Part shown: positions 4,201-63,711 of the stretch, one piece after another
Layout of the letters: every line of letters begins with the position of its first letter
Numbering within the stretch: the stretch's first letter is position 1
From: Entomortierella parvispora E1425
Taxonomy: Eukaryota > Fungi > Mortierellomycota
DNA length: 64,000 nt
Direction of reading: 5' to 3'
NCBI GenBank assembly: GCA_020891255.1
Contig: BQFW01000011.1
Location: 310,001 to 374,000, forward strand
Translations under genes and position numbers: made by a program
Notes under the pieces: generated by a model
Databases searched by the model: none
What the model was told of the DNA's origin: nothing
Seen by the model: the letters and a program-made list of their open reading frames with translations, nothing else

Positions 4201-5636
4201 TGAGACTGTGTACCAACATGAGGCAGGAACTCTTTCTGCAGAATCTCAGTGGCATATTTTGTACGCTTCTCCTTTGTCACACCCACAGTGGTTCCTCTCT
4301 TGCCGATATAGTCCAGAGCGACCTCCTTATCCTGGATCACAAAAGCCTGCTCGATACAAGGCTTCAGCATCTCCAACATTTGGTAGTCATTGCGATCGTA
4401 GCAGATGTGCTCCAAGACGTCACGATCGGCCACCAAACCCAGGGCACGGAACACTACCACCACGGGAATGCCATCGCGAATATAAGGGAGTGTGGCCTCG
4501 ATAGTCTGTCCGGTTCCCGCGCGTTCCGCTGACCGAGAAAGCAACTTTACCCAAACGGGGGACGCATTCTTGGAACCGCGCTCGACCGAACTTCTGATTT
4601 CTGCTGTAAAAGAGTACTTGTGTCCCTGTGGTTTGTTGAAGACGTAGACGGTATTTGTAGCCATGCGCTCCTGAGCAATAAGAACCTTTTCTGATCCGTT
4701 AATGACGAAGTAACCACCCTATAAAGAAAATCAAACGGTTGTTAAAAAGAAGAGCCCAACCAACATGAGCCTTGATATGATCAGTAGTGGAGTCGGTGCC
4801 TTTACCTGATCGTATTGACACTCGTTCATCTTTTGCAGCTCATTGTCATCTAATCCAGTCAACATGCAGTATGTCGACTTTAACATGATGGGCACCATGC
4901 CGATAAAGATCTTGTTCATGTCTCCGCCATCTTCGTTGTCTTCAGCCTCCATGAACATGTCGTGTGGGTTCGTCTTGCCCTTGTTCTTTTCATGATGGGG
5001 GTTGGCGACCTTGACAGTCTTTCGCATGTCCACGTAAAGAGGCGCAGCATATCTAGTGATGAAGAACAAGAACCAAGAACATGGTCAGCCCTCTGCCTAT
5101 GGATGAGGGCTCTAGGTCTGCCAGTCCAGAAAAGAAGATGTCGCCTCTATCCTTACGTCAAACTACGCAGACGCGCTTCGTGAGGGTACATGGGTTGTGT
5201 GCTTCCGTCTGATTCTGTCATACTTGGTCGCGACAAGTAGATCTGTCCAAAGTTGATCTCGTAACGTTTCTAATGGAAGCAAAGCAGATCAAACACAGTC
5301 AGGTTGATGCGATGCAGACCAGACGATGCCAGCCAATCTGTCAAAAAGACGAGATTCACTGCAAAACAGACAAAGAGCAACATTAAGAACACAAAGACGC
5401 ACTGTCAAATCGCCCTCGGCACCTGTGTGCTGGCTCGAGGTCTGGAGGATCATGTCCGAGTTTTCATCGACAAGCTCCTGCATTGTGTTTTGGATGAACT
5501 CGTCAAAGGAGTCGAGCTGCTGACGCACAAGGCCCTTGTCTTCGAAAAACGACGAGATCACGGCCCAGCAGTCCTCCTGGGTGATGGCCTCCTGGTCCAA
5601 GTCCTCGTCGAGATAGTATGCGCTGTCGTCTGCCAT
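1291..5636 (-). CDS. RPB2: DNA-directed RNA polymerase II second-largest subunit, multi-exon
   Basis: Hallmark motifs [61 protein letters not shown](C) and the C-terminal zinc module CDLC..CRSC. ATG (MADDSAYY) at 5636, TAG at 1291. Confidence 0.98.
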
Positions 5637-55764: not shown

Positions 55765-56147
55765 AAACTGAACTGAGTTTCCATATACATACAGTGAAGG
55801 ACAAAACTGTCTCATGTTTTCAAATTTTTCTATTACGCGTGAACGCTCCATCATAAACGCGTCAATTGCTCTATGCTTTTGAAATATGGATGATATATCA
55901 ATGAAGTAGATGTGTGCGAAGTTTGGGATCACAAATCTTCGTCACAAATTCTAATTGTAGTCGCAGACTACGAATAATAGTAGTAGTCATACATATATAC
56001 AGTTGCAGACTACACTCTTTAATTATAGTCTCCTGACTACATTCCATATCCATAGTTCGAAACTTCAGACAATGGCGACTTTTCCGTCAACTTGTGAATT
56101 TGGATAAACAACCAAACACTGGTGGGATCCATAGAATTAGTGATATT

Positions 56148-56258
56148 TGCAATAGGAGTATCGAGGGTGGAGTGGAGACAAGAAGTGAGTTTTATTATAT
56201 TGCAAGTTTCTAGCTTTTGTAGGTACACATCGCGTGATGTCACCGTATTCCTGTTACA
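56148..56258 (-). mobile_element. 111-bp LTR-like unit (TGTAAC...ATTGCA), copy 1
   Basis: 110/111 identical to 58165-58275 in inverted orientation; preceded on its own strand by TCCAC (56263-56259). Confidence 0.85.
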
Positions 56259-56731
56259 GTGGAGGAGATGAGGTTGTTGCCTCAGGAGGCGTGAGTTCAA
56301 TATAGCGAGGGTCATTTCCTTCATCAGAAGATGATCTTGAGACTTCTGAGGGTGTCCTCTCAGGCGAGGACTCTTCTGGTGTTTGATTCTTGGTCTCATT
56401 GGTTGAGTCTTCCGTGGGTGTATTCTCTGGCGAGGACTCTTCTAATATTTGATTCTTAATCTCATTGGGCGGTGCAACTGGAGGAAGAATGGTGTCAACT
56501 CCTCCAAGTTTCGCGTGTGAATCAGACTCTTTTTCGATTGGGGCACTGGCCTTTTTTTCGGCGGATCAATGGCTCATCCTCTTCCTCGTCCTCATCCTCC
56601 TCAATTGATGGTGAACGAGCTTTACGCTTGATTGTGCGCTTGATGGTAGGGGTGTCTGGAAGGGACACTAGGGAAGGATTAGGGCAATCCTGCCGTCGTG
56701 AGAGAATACGCTTTTTTGGAGGGCTGGGCAT
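56259..56731 (-). pseudogene. 5' piece (X) of a disrupted 446-aa ORF, now inverted
   Basis: ATG 56731 (MPSPPKKR); one extra A in the A7 run at 56552-56558; then open to the LTR junction; includes a 66-nt tandem duplication (56359 vs 56425). Confidence 0.75.
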
Positions 56732-57078
56732 TGTTTGGTTGGGGAGCAATATAAAGGATGGTTACAAAACACCCACGTCCTTTTTTTTCTGCCCTGCGAC
56801 AGTCATGTTTGAAACATTTTTCGGGGAGAATTCAGATTAGAGACTAAATAAGTCCGACTAGCGAATGTCAGAATAATTTTATTCTTCGGACAACTAAAAA
56901 AAAATTGTGTCATTTTATTTGAAAGGCACAATAGCATTTATTATTTTGTTTAGTTTCAGTTTTTTTTTTCTATAAAGAAGGGAGCAAAATCCATTTTGCT
57001 CCTGGTTGCCTTTTTCCCTTACGATTCCTACCAGTACACTTTTGTTGAACCCTTCAGAACACAAACATACATCCCCCT

Positions 57079-57161
57079 CTTCCTGCCCGATATCCCCTTT
57101 GCAGCAGCAGCAAGCTCGACGCCTTAATTCCGATTGCTGAGACTATTAGTAGCTAGTCTAA
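57079..57161. repeat. 83-bp core shared with the ~507-bp solo LTR family, inside a more diverged relative
   Basis: 82/83 identical to 62423-62505; flanks align only loosely. Confidence 0.85.
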
Positions 57162-58164
57162 ACCTCCTCCATATCACAGACCTATTGCGTTCTGTTGATC
57201 GACCTTGTATACTCACAAGTTACGATCTCCCCCGTCCTCGTCAAGTCCCGTCAAGAACCTCGGCCAACCACTTCTCCGTGTCCTTGCTCACTTACGAGGT
57301 ACCAACAATGTCTTGTCTCTTTTGAGTGGACTTGTACGATCTTGGCATCCCACCCTGAGGCCTTAACTGGCGCTTGGGCACCCTGAGACCGTAACTGGTG
57401 CTTGGGAACCTCCCTTATCTTCTCGTCGCCTTCCCTCGAGTCCCTCCTGAACCCTCAGTTAGGCGGCCTTGTCCCCTTTCCCTGATAGAATACTTCTAGC
57501 CTTGCTCTTACTGATTAGATCCCTTCAATCCTCCCTTGTTGTTGTTATTAGTTAGTATAGTACCTAGTGTTCGCCTCCGTAGTTGTTTATGTGCCGGATC
57601 AGGCCTCTGACCCTTAATTTTTAGTTGACGAAGATATATCAGCGCCTCCAGCGCTCTCTCATTAAAACAGATCTCTTCTTCCGTCTCGTCATTACTCGTA
57701 CCCATACTTACTCACGTTGACGGGGACCTCCTGCCCCGCACACTCATGAGCACGGGTGGCTGTTTGCGCTGCGATTGACCTAAATACCGCAACAACCCGA
57801 GACGGGAAAAGCCCCCGGCGATCAATAGCTGTCCAGGACCTGATCGTCGAAACCCCCTTCCTCCTCTGGACAAAGGGAGTGTCCCTTGAAAAGTATATGG
57901 CACACGGAGTCAGTGAGAATAAGAGAGGGATCTCTGTTTTATTGAACCGGTCAGGATATTATCCTGACCGTTGCCTCCGTGACTGTGCCTTGCTGCCAGC
58001 AGCATCATTTGCCGCTGCGCCACCAAATTATGCGACAGAACTTCCCCTCCCATGGAGAGCGAAGCGCGGGTTGACACTACTGGTCAGTGAGAGCCTCCTG
58101 GAATCCTGAATGTTATTCCAGATGCATTGTCCAGAGCATTTCCTGATGATCTATGGGAGGAAAG

Positions 58165-58275
58165 TGTAACAGGAATACGGTGACATCACGCGATCTGTAC
58201 CTACAAAAGCTAGAAACTTGCAATATAATAAAACTCACTTCTTGTCTCCACTCCACCCTCGATACTCCTATTGCA
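58165..58275 (+). mobile_element. 111-bp LTR-like unit, copy 2, with polypurine tract
   Basis: GGGAGGAAAG (58155-58164) precedes TGTAAC; followed by TCCAC (58276-58280); contains TATAATAAA. Confidence 0.85.
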
Positions 58276-58280
58276 TCCAC

Positions 58281-58732
58281 CCTCCCGTTCTCGCAAATCA
58301 ACTCCTGGGCGTCGTGATATCGAAGTTCCTGATGCCATTTCTATCCGGATTAACCTTTACTACGGCGCGCCACTCCAAAGGTGCCGAATTCGAAAGAGTT
58401 GGCCCGAACCTGTAGTCTGGAGTTTTAAATGGGAGGAAGATGACATCGACTCATTAGCTGCCAAGCTGCGTCGTCGCACAACCGCTCCTTCACTGAAAGA
58501 CTTTATATGGCCGCAGGATCAGGCGCTCCACGTTAAACCCACACACAATGCAGCACAGCAATACTATCAACCATTGGATATTGGCAATTATAAAGTGAAA
58601 CTCAAGCGTGCTTGGACTGCTGAGTCAAGGCGGTTGCCAAATGTCGATGACATAGTTGTGGACGTCTTCGCGTACTTGACAGATAATCGGCCTCAGGCAC
58701 TCGGTTCCGGGGGCAAGGATCAAATCAGAAGA
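58281..58732 (+). pseudogene. Middle piece (Y) of the disrupted 446-aa ORF
   Basis: Stop-free (PSRSRKSTPG...ALHVKPTHNAAQQ...GKDQIRR); joins X in frame across TCCAC and joins Z in frame across the Helitron. Confidence 0.75.
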
Positions 58733-59265
58733 TCCCCCAAACAAGAAGGCAACACGGATTTCGTGACCGTCTTTTTGGTGCAATTTGATTGGTTATCGCT
58801 AAGTCATGTGACCATCCCGTTGCAATCAAACAATCACACAAATGCAGCTTACTTACACCTCCGTCTTTTACACCTCCGTCTTTTTTTTATATATTATTTA
58901 TTACATATTCGTTATATAATATTTTCCTTGGCTCCTCATTCCTGAACTTCCTTATTATGCATGCATGCATGCTAATTAACAAGTACAGTGTACACCTCCG
59001 TCTTTTTTTTTATCAAGTTTAATATGTATAATATTCGTTTTATTAATATAAATGATTTAATTATTAAATTAAAAAGAAATTCGCGGGGGGGGTTTTTTTT
59101 TTCGTTTTTCTGTTACCCTGTTACCATTTCCGGCCATCTATTCTTCCTCACTCCCACTCTCACTCCCTCTCTCCGCCAGTATTTCCTCTTGCCTCTGCTC
59201 CTGTCTCCCTCTCTCACAGGCCCATGTCCTTTCTGTCTAGGCACCAAAGCCGGAGCGTTTGTAAG

Positions 59266-60160
59266 GGCAGATGACGGCCATGCCATGCCACCCAGATGAC
59301 GACCAGATTAGAGTCAGCCACTAGATGGCCACCAGATAATAACCCATACCAGCCAGATAATAGCCAGATGACGGTCAGCGCTGTGGTGTTGCTACAATGG
59401 GTTGGGGATCGGTCGTAGCTCAAGGAGAGAGGGGCTGGTCACAAGTGATCAAGGGAAAGGGGATTGCTTGCGAGGGGGAGGATAGACGTTGCAGGATCTC
59501 ACTGTCTAAACTGTGTGAACCAAGTATCAATAAAGATCTCAGTCGGGTGGAAGCTCAAGACTTGTACGAAGGCAAGCTTGATCGGCAGAACAGGGTCTGT
59601 GATATCCAAAGGTAAAGGGGGGGGAGGAGGTTAGACTAGCTACTAATAGTCTCAGCAATCGGAATTAAGGCGTCGATCTTGCTGCTGCTGCAAAGGGGAT
59701 ATCGGGCAGGAAGTGGGGGGGGGATGTGTATGTGTTCTGTAACGATCAAACAAAAGCAAACGAAAAAGTAGGGAAGGAAGCGACCCAGAGCAATTACTGC
59801 TCTGAACACGAAATTATATTAACGCAATCTTTTAAGGGTATCTAAACTGACTTCTACAAATGTGTGATCCGTATCTACTACACCACAGCGCCAGGCAGAT
59901 GGTCACCATCTGACCTGTGCCAGCAAGATGATGGCCCATTACAGCGAGATGGGGGGCAGATGACGGTTAGCGCCGGGTAGATGGCGACGAACAGACCTGT
60001 GCCAACAAGATGGCGACCCATGCCAACAAGATGGCGACAGATGGCGACGAACTGTCCTCTACCAGCAAGATGATTGACCTGCGTCGACCAGATGACGGTC
60101 AGCGCGCAGTTAGATGTCCTGTTATAACAAGTTGATTGACATGCGCCTCTCAGATGACCG
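59266..60160. repeat. Irregular AGATG-core minisatellite (e.g. CCAGATGACGGTCAGC), interrupted by solo LTR A
   Basis: About 16 AGATG cores counted; related units recur at about 60990-61110; (ACAAGG)n follows at about 60174-60197. Confidence 0.8.
59382..59887. mobile_element. Solo LTR A (506 bp)
   Basis: Termini TGTGGTGT...ACACCACA; 4-bp TSD GCGC (59378-81 and 59888-91); near-identical inverted copy of 62249-62756. Confidence 0.9.
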
Positions 60161-60906
60161 CAATGAGGGGGGACAAGGACAAGGACAAGGACAAGGACGA
60201 GGCAACTGTTAAGGTAACTAAGCGTCCTTCGCTGCCTTCCATCTCTACTCGATACCAGCCAGACAGCTTACATGTAACGGCTCTTTCCAATTGATTGTCA
60301 CTCTCAATGCTGCTGTCATATATCAGAATTACCTCAATAGACATGAAGATTCGACTTGAAGAGATAAGATAGGAGTGTGAAAACTACCGCTTTTTTCTCC
60401 ACCACTTATCACTTGCGTCTATTCAGCGTGGCACTAGCGGCAGATAGGGGCAAGGATAGGGAGGTACAGGAAGAAAGCAGAGGACGCGTATTACTTTGAA
60501 GAAAAGAAAGAGCAGGTAGGATTGATTTTTTGGAGAAAAAAAACAGCATGGAAGCACCGCGCGACTCGAGTGTTCCGGAATATCTCACATTCTTTTGTTT
60601 TTCCCTTTCCATAGTCCATCCTTCTTCACTCCTTCCCCTCTCCGGTGGAGTACCATCTCTCTCTGCCAGTGTTGCCTCCTGCCTCTGCTCCTATTTCCCT
60701 CTATCTGTTGGTGCTCAAGTAACTTTCTAAGAGCCACAGGCCCATGTCCTTCCTGTCTAGGCATCAAAGCTGCAGCGTTTATAATAGCAGCAATAGAGGT
60801 ATGTGCCTGGAATGGCAACGGTTCCTTATTTTTGCTGTTTCTCACTGTTGACCACTTGAAATTGTCGCGCGCACACTTTGCTCTGTCGGGGCAGCGGCAA
60901 TTAAAC

Positions 60907-60940
<34 letters not shown>

Positions 60941-61979
60941 GTTTAAGCGCTTTACCTGACGCTGACTTCTTTCCATCCATCATCCTTTCTACCAGATGTT
61001 CTGCAAATGACCTGCGTCGATCACATGGAAGCCAGATGGCGACCAACTATCCTGTGCCAGCGAGATGATTGACCTATGTCGACCAGATGACGGCCAGCCC
61101 TCAGCCAGATGTCCTGTTGTAATAAAACAATGAGAGGGGACAAGGACAAGGGCAACTAATAAGGTAACTAAAACGCCTTTCGCTGCCTTTCATCTCTACT
61201 CGATACCAGCCAGATAGCTTGCCCTGTCTAATTGTCAGGCACCAGGTGGTCAAATACTGTAATCTTTTCTGATGACCTTTTCTTTTTGTAATGGTTCTTT
61301 TCAATTGATAGGCAATGCCTCTGTCATTTACAAAGCTTCCATCGTTTATCAACATTTCCTCACTGGACATGAAAAATTCGACTTGAAGAGATAAGGATAG
61401 GAGTATGGAACTACCGCTTTTTTTTCTACTACTTATCACTTCCGTCTATTACTTGGTGGCGCTAGAGGTACTGTAAGTAGGGGCAAGGACGGGGGCACAG
61501 GAAGAAGGCAGAGGATGCGAATTATCAAAGGAAACGTAGTGGCTATTAAACTCGCCTTGATTCAAGGCTGGCATGCATTCGCCTTACTGTTGGTAGTAGA
61601 GCCACCAAAAGTGGGGCATTGTGCGGTATCCAATAATCTCCGCTTCGCATCATGTAGGTAAGTAACATGAAAGTGCCAGTAACCAAATGCCAAAGCAAAT
61701 GTTACAAGAGAGGTTGATTCTACTCATCGACAATATGAAATAAATCACAGTATAAATTTGAACAAGTATAATGTGGTGCCACGAAGACCCGTGGCGTGAC
61801 CCACGGGCACATGGCTACGCGTTAAATGTTTGCTTAAAATTAAAAAACTATAATAGCTGATTAGTCTAGGTTTATTAATAATATAATAATGATAAAATGA
61901 AGCCTTCAATAAAATATTATCGAAAATCAGATGCCATCGTCTTGATTGGGTGCCGCGGCGAAGCTGCGGGTGCCGCTAG

Positions 61980-62908
61980 TCATCAAAAAGCCGCATCCAA
62001 GCCTCTGCCGACCACATTCAAAAAGCAATCGGCGATGGCAGGTTGCAGCCATTGGGCGAGATAACAATGGCGCATTTTGCAAGGCACTTAGCAAAGAGGC
62101 CTCCCCCCTCTACAGACGATCCTCCGACATTACCTCAAACTGCAACATTTCGTCAAATGCAACACTTGGACAGACAGAAGGAAGCACTCGAGCAGCGTAC
62201 AGCAGCAGAGAATGAGGTGAGGCAAAATGAATATTTTTCATTCAACGCTGTGGTGTAGTAGATACAGATCACACATTTGTAGAAGTCAGTTTAGATACCC
62301 TTAAAAGATCGCGTTAATATAATTTCGTGTTCAGAGCAGTAATTGCTCTGGGTCGCTTCCTTCCCTACTTTTTCGTTTGCTTTTGTTTGATCGTTACAGA
62401 ACACATACACATCCCCCCCCCACTTCCTGCCCGATATCCCCTTTGCAGCAGCAGCAAGATCGACGCCTTAATTCCGATTGCTGAGACTATTAGTAGCTAG
62501 TCTAACCTCCTTCCCCCCCCTTTTACCTTTGGATATCACAGACCCTGTTCTGCCGATCAAGCTTGCCTTCGTACAAGTCTTGAGCTTCCACCGGACTGAG
62601 ATCTTTATTAATACTTGGTTCACACAGTTTAGACAGTGAGATCCTGCAACGTCTATCCTCCCCCTCGCAAGCAATCCCCTTTCCCTTGATCACTTGTGAC
62701 CCGCCCCTCTCTCCTTGAGCTACGACCGATCCCCAACCCATTGTAGCAACACCACAACGCCAAAATCCAAATCAAAAAATCAGAGCTACGACAAGCGCTC
62801 TCACTCCCTGACATGGACTTGGATGGGCTTGTGAACTTCAGACCTGGCGATATCGATCCTCCAGGAGAGGATATGAATGATGTTGACCATGAAGACGATG
62901 AACACTAG
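61980..62908 (+). pseudogene. 3' piece (Z) of the disrupted 446-aa ORF, split by solo LTR B
   Basis: 61980-62248 plus 62761-62908 read in frame: SSKSRIQASA...YFSFNA|KIQIKKSELRQALSLPD...DVDHEDDEH*. Confidence 0.75.
62249..62756. mobile_element. Solo LTR B (508 bp), opposite orientation to A
   Basis: Termini TGTGGTGT...ACACCACA; 4-bp TSD ACGC (62245-48 and 62757-60). Confidence 0.9.
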
Positions 62909-62915
62909 ATACGAT

Positions 62916-63290
62916 TTACTTGCTGAAGACCAACGAACGACGATCGTAGCCACAATGAGAAAATATATCTACTGCCAAATCCTCTCTACGTGAATATCGC
63001 ATGAATGCCAAGTCCAGAACAGGCTCTGGCAGGTGGTGGTAAGCAAGATAACCATCTTTCTGAATAAGTCGCTTGACCAAAGAAAACCCAGTTTCGATGG
63101 GGTTAAGATGGGGGGAGTAAGGTGGCAAAAAAAAAAGCAGTGCGCCTCGACTTTCCACTGCCTCCTCAAACTGCTTGTACATATGAATACGGGCGTTGTC
63201 AATTATAACAATCGAGTTTCGCATTGGGTACGGGTTAAGATTTGGTAAGATGGTTGAAACAAAAGCATCATGAAACGATTGTCGAGTATG
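62916..63290 (-). mobile_element. 5'-truncated Tc1/IS630-family (DDE_3-type) transposase remnant
   Basis: FVSTILPNLNPYPMRNSIVIIDNARIH and LFFLPPYSPHLNPIE (second D and the E of the triad); the first-D region and DNA-binding domain are missing. Confidence 0.85.
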
Positions 63291-63711
63291 TGCGGGGCAG
63301 GGGTGGGATATTTTGGGCTCTCACTTACAATATGACTATCGAGACAAGAAGGAGGATCTTTATGTTCTGCCCTCGCACTCCTTTGATAAGGGAGTGCGAG
63401 GGTGGCTTGCTACTAAACTAGGTTACTAAAATAAACATCCCTACATCCCTATTAATACACTTCAAGGCCCACGATATGCCACAGCTCTCTCCCATAGAAG
63501 AGGCTGAAAGCCGGGCTTCTTTGCATATCGTATCTGCTCCTGATTCATACAAGATGGCATCTTGTTTTGAGGTCAACATCCTCCCATGACTTTCTTCTTT
63601 GATGCCCTACAGGTATATACCAAACCTGATTGATGTAAAAACCCATTGGGATAAAAAAACCATCAATGCATCGCTCCAACACTTCGCCCAAATTCTCGTT
63701 GAGTATGGTGA

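Follow-up and report, generated by a model that had tools for sequence, protein, structure and literature searches.

An open reading frame in four pieces in a repeat cluster of Entomortierella parvispora, probably the second gene of a Tc1-like transposon

Four separated coding stretches in the window (64,000 nt of Entomortierella parvispora E1425, contig BQFW01000011.1, positions 310,001 to 374,000 of the forward strand; coordinates below count from its first letter) are a single gene of ∼446 codons from this Mortierella-type soil fungus, split by textbook mobile-element insertions. We consider it probable (roughly 80%) that the rebuilt open reading frame (ORF) belongs, as its second gene, to a Tc1-like DNA transposon, that this transposon lies in a repeat-rich cluster, and that the ORF was later broken by the elements of that cluster. 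The pieces are as follows.

56259 to 56731, minus strand: piece 1, with the ATG at 56731 and ending in a TCCAC copy (56263-56259); the N-terminal part is basic/acidic and is followed by a linker rich in Ser/Pro/Glu that contains a 66-nt tandem repeat (repeat D5).
56552 to 56558, minus strand: A7 run (T7 on the plus strand), the likeliest site of a +1 frameshift.
58281 to 58732, plus strand: piece 2, the conserved domain of the family, modelled as a PB1-like beta-grasp.
61980 to 62248, plus strand: piece 3, a three-helix region (model pLDDT 92), terminating in the first ACGC.
62761 to 62908, plus strand: piece 4, a conserved C-terminal motif and an acidic tail, with TAG at 62906-62908.

A sequence-only reading of this DNA had proposed that these pieces form one ORF free of internal stops, and both points were borne out when the open frames were examined by reference, each piece singly. 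Piece 1 is open in frame 1 from 56731 to 56561 (piece 1a) and in the shifted frame from 56550 to 56260 (piece 1b), both on the minus strand. On the plus strand, pieces 2 and 3 are open over 58283-58732 and 61980-62246, in the phases required by the arithmetic of that reading, and piece 4 is open over 62762-62908, where TAG terminates it. Neither of the codons split at joins is a stop. The lengths sum to 472 (473 minus one A) + 452 + 269 + 148 = 1341 nt, or 447 codons including TAG; by arithmetic, the chance that ∼446 random codons lack a stop is near 1e-9.

The same reading had named homologs that match one piece only, or that break colinearity, as evidence against a single gene; homologs from Linnemannia and Mortierella instead proved colinear over all three joins. 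Pieces 2, 3 and 4 lie in one ORF in the homologs P0001, P0002, P0004 and P0005 and in paralogs from the same genome. Across the Helitron and solo-LTR joins the homologs align without gaps, with zero residues gained or lost: they read DQIRR/SSK over the former (the slash marks the join) and have a single residue where the latter splits a codon. P0001 (Linnemannia hyalina) is 60% identical to piece 2, while P0005, a 412-aa protein of Mortierella antarctica, carries piece 1a at its N-terminus, with which residues 5-57 of piece 1 align at E 1e-6 (the piece 1a match covers P0005 residues 8-48). No homolog of the linker (piece 1b) was detected, so its frame is given solely by 97 open codons and phase continuity. 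The family is large, with 425 clusters at 50% identity and no annotation, and all of its named members come from the Mortierellaceae. One member of 570 aa is conserved in seven L. elongata strains. In another protein, P0085, the family is fused to a GDP-mannose dehydratase, most likely through a merged gene model.

Each join had been claimed to fall on the signature of a transposable element (TE). The TCCAC, A/TC...CTAG/T and ACGC boundaries were all verified, and the assignment of three disruptions to TEs holds against the rest of the genome. The inserted elements and the DNA displaced with piece 1 are listed here.

56148 to 56258, minus strand: left copy of a 111-nt LTR (TG..CA) of a Ty3/gypsy chromovirus; only the LTR matches, with no internal element adjoining.
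56934 to 58164, no strand assigned: flanking cluster DNA moved by the inversion; a repeat fragment to 57590 (>40 copies) and a patchwork of other repeats.
58165 to 58280, plus strand: right copy of the 111-nt LTR (58165-58275) and TCCAC (58276-58280).
58733 to 61979, plus strand: non-autonomous Helitron (2738 nt belong to the element proper) with 5′ TC and a 3′ hairpin and CTAG, lying between A and T.
59378 to 59890, minus strand: a solo LTR inside the Helitron, from the 508-nt family (LTR 59382-59886, GCGC on each side).
62249 to 62760, plus strand: 508-nt solo LTR (62249-62756, TG..CA) and the second ACGC (62757-62760).

The Helitron is present in three genomic copies (in the window and on contigs C4 and C12), whose termini are identical to the base and which all read A/TC...CTAG/T; apart from the bordering A and T their flanks are unrelated, and a target duplication is absent. 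The 3′ hairpin has a 7-bp GC-rich stem ending 10 nt before the terminus, its energy against shuffled sequences being not significant for so short a GC-rich stretch. Internal repeats and the nested LTR make up the interior, in which we found no long ORF that could encode a Rep/helicase, and the element is therefore non-autonomous. In its 5′ TC, its CTAG after a GC-rich hairpin, its A/T insertion site, the lack of duplication and its identical-ended copies it agrees with known Helitrons, and nothing notable sets it apart. The C4 copy represents the empty site for the nested solo LTR. The 508-nt LTR family has at least 50 copies (96-99% identical), and the member between pieces 3 and 4 has the properties of a solo LTR, with ACGC at 62245-62248 and 62757-62760. 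That the disruptions are recent, as also claimed, is compatible with the 96-100% similarity among the TE copies.

The first join involves an inversion. Its two 111-nt LTRs, both TG..CA, form an inverted pair that is 99% complementary, and GTGGA at 56259-56263 faces TCCAC at 58276-58280 as the target duplication. The left copy is 100% identical to the LTRs of a full element, L040, and in the genome this LTR (at least 41 matches, 99% identical) otherwise occurs as direct pairs ∼4955 nt apart. The full element is 5.07 kb long (LTRs at 501-611 and 5455-5565 of L040) and carries the Pfam domains RVT_1, RT_RNaseH, Integrase_H2C2, rve, SH3_Tf2-1 and Chromo between its paired direct LTRs, i.e. the order of reverse transcriptase, RNase H, integrase and chromodomain that makes it a chromovirus. 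It shares this order with the chromoviruses of repeat-rich or centromeric clusters in fungi, and has in common with them TG..CA LTRs, duplications of 4-5 bp, solo LTRs, nesting and copies that recombine with each other, but its LTRs are unusually short. Since a 1.9-kb segment is enclosed by inverted 111-nt arms, the pair might be taken for the terminal inverted repeat of a DNA transposon with piece 1 as cargo. This is extremely improbable, and we reject it: the arms are the LTRs found elsewhere around gag-pol with integrase and chromodomain, the outer flanks (ATATT/TCCAC) are no duplication, and the flank just inside the left arm is the exact reverse complement of the one just outside the right arm.

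How the chromovirus LTRs brought about the inversion is less simple. The sequence-only reading had called all of the events reversible, which stands on paper only; at the second breakpoint of the inversion, however, a matching duplication is missing, as ATATT (56143-56147) is not the reverse complement of GAAAG (58160-58164). A simple inversion between two elements predicts a second matching pair, so an extra step is needed and no single clean event would suffice; clean two-element recombination was rejected for this reason. A one-step inversion within a single full element was likewise discarded, neither LTR adjoining internal chromovirus sequence. The copy of the left flank on contig C8 runs on into unrelated DNA.

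Within piece 1, the +1 shift is confined to a 44-nt interval (56568-56524) that contains the A7 run and an A5 run. An intron in place of the frameshift was rejected, because no canonical or fungal-type donor yields the required phase. The fourth event of the sequence-only reading, an added A, may be a homopolymer miscount in the assembly rather than a mutation. In long-read assemblies, wrong homopolymer lengths are the most common error to remain, and the 1.9-kb inverted segment is flanked by near-identical inverted repeats between which it could have been mis-oriented. That assembly artefacts of these two kinds explain some of the damage is nevertheless rather unlikely in our view: long reads extend well beyond a 111-nt repeat, which makes mis-orientation unlikely, and the gene would be disrupted by the Helitron and the solo LTR in any case.

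Two further features suggest that the ORF lies within a transposon.

56732 to 56933, minus strand: 5′ region of the Tc1-like transposon, 200 nt, with the left terminus TTGTGCC... at 56931 and the flanking TA at 56932-56933.
62916 to 63308, minus strand: DDE_3 transposase remnant, the C-terminal ∼126 codons, convergent with the ORF (PF13358, 4.1e-14).

The stop codons of the ORF and of the transposase remnant are 7 nt apart, tail to tail. The remnant is cut at 63308, beyond which lie other repeat DNA and a Ty3/gypsy element (gypsy pol, L021 1715-3787). The terminus TA/TTGTGCCTTTCAA, located 200 nt upstream of the ORF, has the motif found at both ends of an intact 3.24-kb unit (L003/L070), although in the window copy TA/TTGTGC is seen at the left end only. 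The intact unit exists in three copies, 99.9-100% identical, with a paralogous ORF and an intact transposase (PF13358, 4.6e-27 in L003; HTH_32 weak); the copies have sharp ends, TA/TTGTGC...GCACAA/TA, in unrelated surroundings. Across the genome, a convergent DDE_3 gene lies directly behind the ORF at 11 of 19 family loci and at 5-8 kb from it at two more, and ORF and transposase diverge in parallel (32-54% versus 53-63% identity).

Membership of the IS630-Tc1-mariner superfamily is indicated by the DDE/D transposase of Tc1/IS630 type with an N-terminal HTH, and by the TA duplication and short terminal inverted repeats (TIRs). A survey of fungi lists DDE_3 among the Tc1/Mariner markers and reports Tc1/Mariner elements in Mortierellomycotina (PMC5751038). 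Classical members, in contrast, have a single ORF and measure 1.3-2.4 kb, whereas this unit, at 3.24 kb, is longer and encloses between its termini a second, conserved ORF (311-446 codons) that runs towards the transposase gene; the TIRs, TTGTGC plus a few bases (∼6-10 nt), are also very short. A literature search found no description of a two-ORF Tc1 element. A transposase together with a second, non-catalytic ORF is the layout of PIF/Harbinger elements, and this likeness suggests an accessory role for ORF2. The unit described here differs from them in having DDE_3 instead of DDE_4, a TA instead of a 3-bp TWA flank, and an ORF2 without Myb/SANT by Pfam or fold but with a beta-grasp and an unmatched helical region.

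Alternatively, the ORF could be an ordinary, lineage-specific host gene at the cluster edge, and the adjacent transposase a separate insertion. Homologs in several Mortierellaceae genera would fit this, as would the paralogs (C1, C2, C12 and C4:279 kb) that lie among ordinary genes without a transposase, one of them beside prolyl-tRNA synthetase. We regard it as unlikely, because tail-to-tail pairing recurs at 11-13 of the 19 loci in lineages only 30-55% identical, the intact unit moves as a whole, its TA/TTGTGC ends enclosing both genes, and the ORF in the window has the same terminus. The pieces were rightly called one gene, but probably a TE-borne one, ORF2 of a Tc1-like transposon, rather than an ordinary host gene. 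As a transposon-borne ORF in a repeat cluster, it is a case of routine nesting of transposons, in which one element type is modestly new. From the stand-alone paralogs and the conserved 570-aa member, the family may be a host family captured by the transposon, or may include domesticated copies.

For the protein itself, Pfam searches of all five sub-pieces and of intact paralogs returned nothing but a sub-threshold DUF2188, and the ESM Atlas gave only unnamed clusters at chance-level recognition. The conserved domain of the family models as a PB1-like beta-grasp fold: residues 154-276 of the P0005 model matched a PB1 domain best (Z 8.1, rmsd 3.7 over 100 residues), the top matches were the PB1 domains of MKK5, NBR1, Cdc24 and Par6 (Z 7.2-8.1 over 81-100 residues), and all top rows were beta-grasp folds. 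Sequence identity in these matches is only 6-12%, Foldseek E is 0.014 or higher, and Z at this level possibly reflects only a common arrangement. The modelled fold is what the conserved N-terminal domain may share with PB1/ubiquitin-like beta-grasps; the low identity and the absent Pfam PB1 match set it apart from them. A Myb/HTH DNA-binding domain in the helical region was considered and dropped as unsupported (best Z 4.3). Our guess is that the ORF product serves the transposon as an accessory factor for protein interaction, with the PB1-like domain at its core. We also put forward, quite tentatively, an undescribed Mortierellaceae-only clade of two-gene Tc1/IS630-like transposons in which ORF2 would be an obligatory transposase partner, like the Myb-like protein of PIF/Harbinger, and which would have been domesticated repeatedly; its second protein would have a basic, NLS-like N-terminus and an acidic tail, with a PB1-like beta-grasp and a three-helix region between them.

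We propose the following order of events. A two-gene IS630-Tc1-mariner unit with TA flanks and TTGTGC termini would have inserted into the repeat cluster on contig C11 of this Mortierellaceae fungus, its ∼446-codon ORF reading inwards from the left end and its DDE_3 transposase converging from the right. A 5.07-kb chromodomain Ty3/gypsy element would then have integrated at TCCAC within the ORF, and recombination with an opposite-oriented copy of its family would have inverted 1.9 kb comprising piece 1, the left end of the transposon and some flank, just the 111-nt solo LTRs remaining at both edges. The 2.74-kb non-autonomous Helitron presumably inserted between A and T and acquired its own solo LTR later, and a 508-nt LTR element probably inserted with a 4-bp ACGC duplication before collapsing to a solo LTR. 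The extra A in the A7 run would have shifted the frame, unless it is miscounted, and the 5′ two-thirds of the transposase gene would have been lost at 63308.

The LTR and repeat families form one 40-60-kb block per contig on C1-C15, and the locus lies at the edge of the single such cluster of C11 (∼364-405 kb), a centromere-like position. From this one-per-contig distribution only, we infer that the clusters are candidate centromeres. A literature search found no description of Mortierellaceae centromeres, and to our knowledge none have been described in Mortierellomycota.

As a teaching case of nested insertion the shattered gene is clean and completely resolved, with every boundary confirmed by independent copies; in itself it is unsurprising. 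The main gain is a by-product: a large unannotated Mortierellaceae family travels as the second gene with a Tc1-type transposase, and the 3.24-kb copy in this genome is apparently active. Pairing with a transposase gives context to hundreds of Mortierella and Linnemannia 'hypothetical proteins', and the distribution of LTRs in one cluster per contig marks candidate centromeres. Repeated domestication, if true, would explain why some copies stand alone among host genes, and why a 444-aa ORF in the region C11:1869400-1870900 apparently joins the transposase HTH to the beta-grasp domain. The two-gene unit also provides a way to test for an accessory protein in a superfamily that is mostly considered single-gene.

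The sequence-only reading had proposed one ORF broken by an LTR with an inversion, a Helitron, a solo LTR and one added A. We translated its four pieces one by one, in the phases that this arithmetic demands; searches were run with individual pieces or with natural intact relatives. The window corresponds to G000:C11:310001-374000, in a genome that comprises 38.9 Mb in 20 contigs.

Pieces of the window ORF and elements between and within them
56259-56731, minus strand: piece 1 (1a, N-terminal; 1b, linker)
58281-58732: piece 2
58733-61979: Helitron
59382-59886: nested solo LTR inside the Helitron, 505 nt, GCGC on both sides (59378-59890)
61980-62248: piece 3
62249-62756: solo LTR, TG..CA ends, ACGC on both sides
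62761-62908: piece 4

In translation, frame 1 of piece 1 is open from an ATG at 56731 (minus strand) to the A7 run, and 56550 to 56260 is open once the frame is moved by one base; pieces 2 (58283-58732, 150 codons), 3 (61980-62246, 89 codons) and 4 (62762-62908, 48 codons and then TAG) are likewise open. The lengths (472 + 452 + 269 + 148) add up to 1341 nt or 447 codons, and no stop codon is read at the two codons split by joins; the four pieces are thus in frame with no internal stop, as proposed. The frameshift is confined to the interval from 56568 (the downstream frame's last stop) to 56524 (the upstream frame's first stop), within which the A7 run lies. An intron in its place was rejected, since no fungal-type donor can replace the shift. 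The extra A may be real or a homopolymer miscall.

Relatives establish that the four pieces are one gene. Paralogs from the same genome, among them L003 (324 aa, in an intact two-gene unit on contig C5), L006 (311 aa) and L009 (310 aa), have a single ORF that covers what corresponds to pieces 2, 3 and 4. A word search started from piece 2 yielded the Linnemannia hyalina protein P0001 (60% identity to piece 2), which as query led to P0002 of L. elongata, to the 412-aa P0005 of Mortierella antarctica, and to P0003 and P0004. Aligned homologs read DQIRR then SSK at the Helitron site, with zero residues gained or lost, and have exactly one residue at the codon split by the solo LTR. Piece 1a (57 aa) aligns with residues 8-48 of P0005 (40% identity, pairwise E 1e-6) and, less strongly, with P0003, which makes the inverted piece the N-terminus of the same gene. 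Homologs are therefore colinear over the three joins, and the reconstruction withstands the refuting test that the sequence-only reading had set for it. No conservation was found for the linker piece 1b (97 codons), and its frame rests on openness and phase. The closest paralog in this genome, at G000:C6:528706-529363, shares 56-76% identity with pieces 2 and 3; it is a decayed, frameshifted fragment, without N- and C-terminal parts and with no transposase beside it.

The presumed Helitron has two other genomic copies, on C4 and C12, and homology begins and ends exactly at its two terminal bases. All three copies read TC...CTAG between a flanking A and T and otherwise have unrelated flanks, which confirms the assignment; the 3′ terminus has a 7-bp GC-rich hairpin ending 10 nt upstream. 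Its own sequence of 2738 nt holds no long ORF, so that the element is non-autonomous. Compared with the C4 copy, the window copy has 96.6% identity in its first 650 nt and 99.4% across 2.1 kb, and the C4 copy (C4:1250798-1253526) is an uninterrupted empty site for the nested 505-nt LTR. The interior also contains a run of about 38 T (60914-60940) adjoining internal 1-kb direct repeats (60038-60423 versus 61033-61450). The solo LTR between pieces 3 and 4 was likewise correctly recognized by its ends and its ACGC target-site duplication: a genome search revealed a 508-nt LTR family of at least 50 copies at 96-99% identity.

An element that is very abundant in this genome has the 111-nt sequence (TG..CA) at the inversion as its LTR. 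This sequence recurs throughout the genome in direct pairs ∼4955 nt apart (99% identity), and the full copy L040 (G000:C5:1489257-1494321) codes for a reverse transcriptase, an RNase H, an integrase and a chromodomain, which defines a 5.07-kb Ty3/gypsy chromovirus with unusually short LTRs. Given its abundance (at least 41 LTR matches besides L040) and the 99% identity of its copies, it looks recently or currently active. A further 111-nt LTR lies inside a different Ty3/gypsy element just past the window (L021, about 4333-4644). The window itself has only two such LTRs, in inverted orientation, and no chromovirus internal sequence was found beside them. On the ORF strand, TCCAC adjoins the 5′ end of the left LTR, after piece 1, and also the 3′ end of the right LTR, ahead of piece 2. 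Both junctions come from a single integration event and now face apart, and hence piece 1 has been turned round relative to piece 2, as the reading from sequence had it. The precision of all four LTR ends suggests that integrase made these junctions; the second flank pair, ATATT (56143-56147) versus GAAAG (58160-58164), shows no duplication. Most economically, the element inserted in the ORF would have recombined with an oppositely oriented copy ∼1.9 kb upstream whose original flanks were by then gone, and each of the two would have been reduced to a solo LTR.

The 508-nt LTR family and the repeat family at 56934-57590 (675 nt) are confined to one block per contig from C1 to C15, each of roughly 40-60 kb (e.g. 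C1 0.98-1.04 Mb, C2 2.19-2.23 Mb and C11 about 364-405 kb). Because unique sequence stops near window position 55939, these limits suggest that the locus sits at the edge of a centromere-like cluster of transposable elements; we know of no described centromeres in this phylum. The chromodomain integrase of other chromoviruses steers integration to heterochromatin, and such targeting would fit the accumulation of elements here.

The broken gene is itself transposon-borne. A DDE_3 (PF13358) transposase gene on the opposite strand ends 7 nt past its stop; the last ∼126 codons remain, up to 63308, where different repeat DNA takes over, with a Ty3/gypsy pol beyond it. The same tail-to-tail pair is found at the C5 paralog (L003/L070, G000:C5:1378318-1381556) and twice on C13, and these copies are 99.9-100% identical across 3.24 kb. 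In this unit the ORF is intact and the transposase, which has one intron, seems complete; the unit ends sharply in unrelated surroundings as TTGTGC...GCACAA between two TA dinucleotides. Judged by sequence, it resembles a two-gene element of the Tc1/mariner superfamily that is still moving, the identity of the three copies and their TA flanks making continued mobility probable. The right terminus of the C5 copy has a 69-nt tandem duplication. In the window, the same terminus (TA followed by TTGTGCCTTTCAA) lies at 56931, 200 nt upstream of the ATG, and adjoins a repeat of > 40 copies. Genome-wide, convergent DDE_3 directly follows the ORF at 11 of 19 family loci and lies 5-8 kb off, inside repeat clusters, at two more; some members of this ORF2 family stand alone among host genes. 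Across four lineages the two genes diverged in parallel (transposases 53-63% identical, ORFs 32-54%). A published survey counts DDE_3 among Tc1/Mariner markers and reports the superfamily in Mortierellomycotina, with no mention of a second ORF (PMC5751038). Outside the window, a single 444-aa frame (G000:C11:1869569-1870633) matches DDE_3 transposase residues 8-103, the N-terminal HTH region, at 39% identity and continues in the same phase, 570 nt further, into the beta-grasp domain typical of the ORF2 family, which makes this frame a candidate for gene fusion or domestication.

Neither the pieces nor their intact relatives matched any Pfam family. Among 1.84 billion representatives, a profile search returned 425 clusters at E ≤ 1e-3 (219 at E ≤ 1e-10), and the named members sampled were all hypothetical proteins of Mortierellaceae (Linnemannia, Mortierella, Gryganskiella and Actinomortierella). 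Judged by its mitochondrial-type prolyl-tRNA synthetase, the genome studied here lies nearest to Gryganskiella cystojenkinii (79% identity, versus about 67% to other genera), which places it in a lineage of soil saprotrophs and not of pathogens. The AlphaFold model of P0005 is confident at residues 151-400, and its first domain, corresponding to piece 2, is predicted to be a beta-grasp. Its top structural matches are all ubiquitin-like folds and the best are PB1 domains (Z 8.1, rmsd 3.7 Å, 100 residues aligned), although such a Z can reflect a common arrangement; Foldseek gave no match below E 0.014. Piece 3, modelled with 52 relatives, forms three helices (pLDDT 92), for which no structural match was found (best Z 4.3). 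As a tentative working guess, the family might supply the transposase with an accessory partner that binds proteins.

Collectively, with each piece open and each transposon join checked against genomic copies, the original observation and its element assignments were correct, and what they describe is transposon nesting of an ordinary kind within a repeat cluster. Modest novelty lies in the Tc1-like element with two genes and in the large, unannotated gene family that belongs to it, so far found only in Mortierellaceae.
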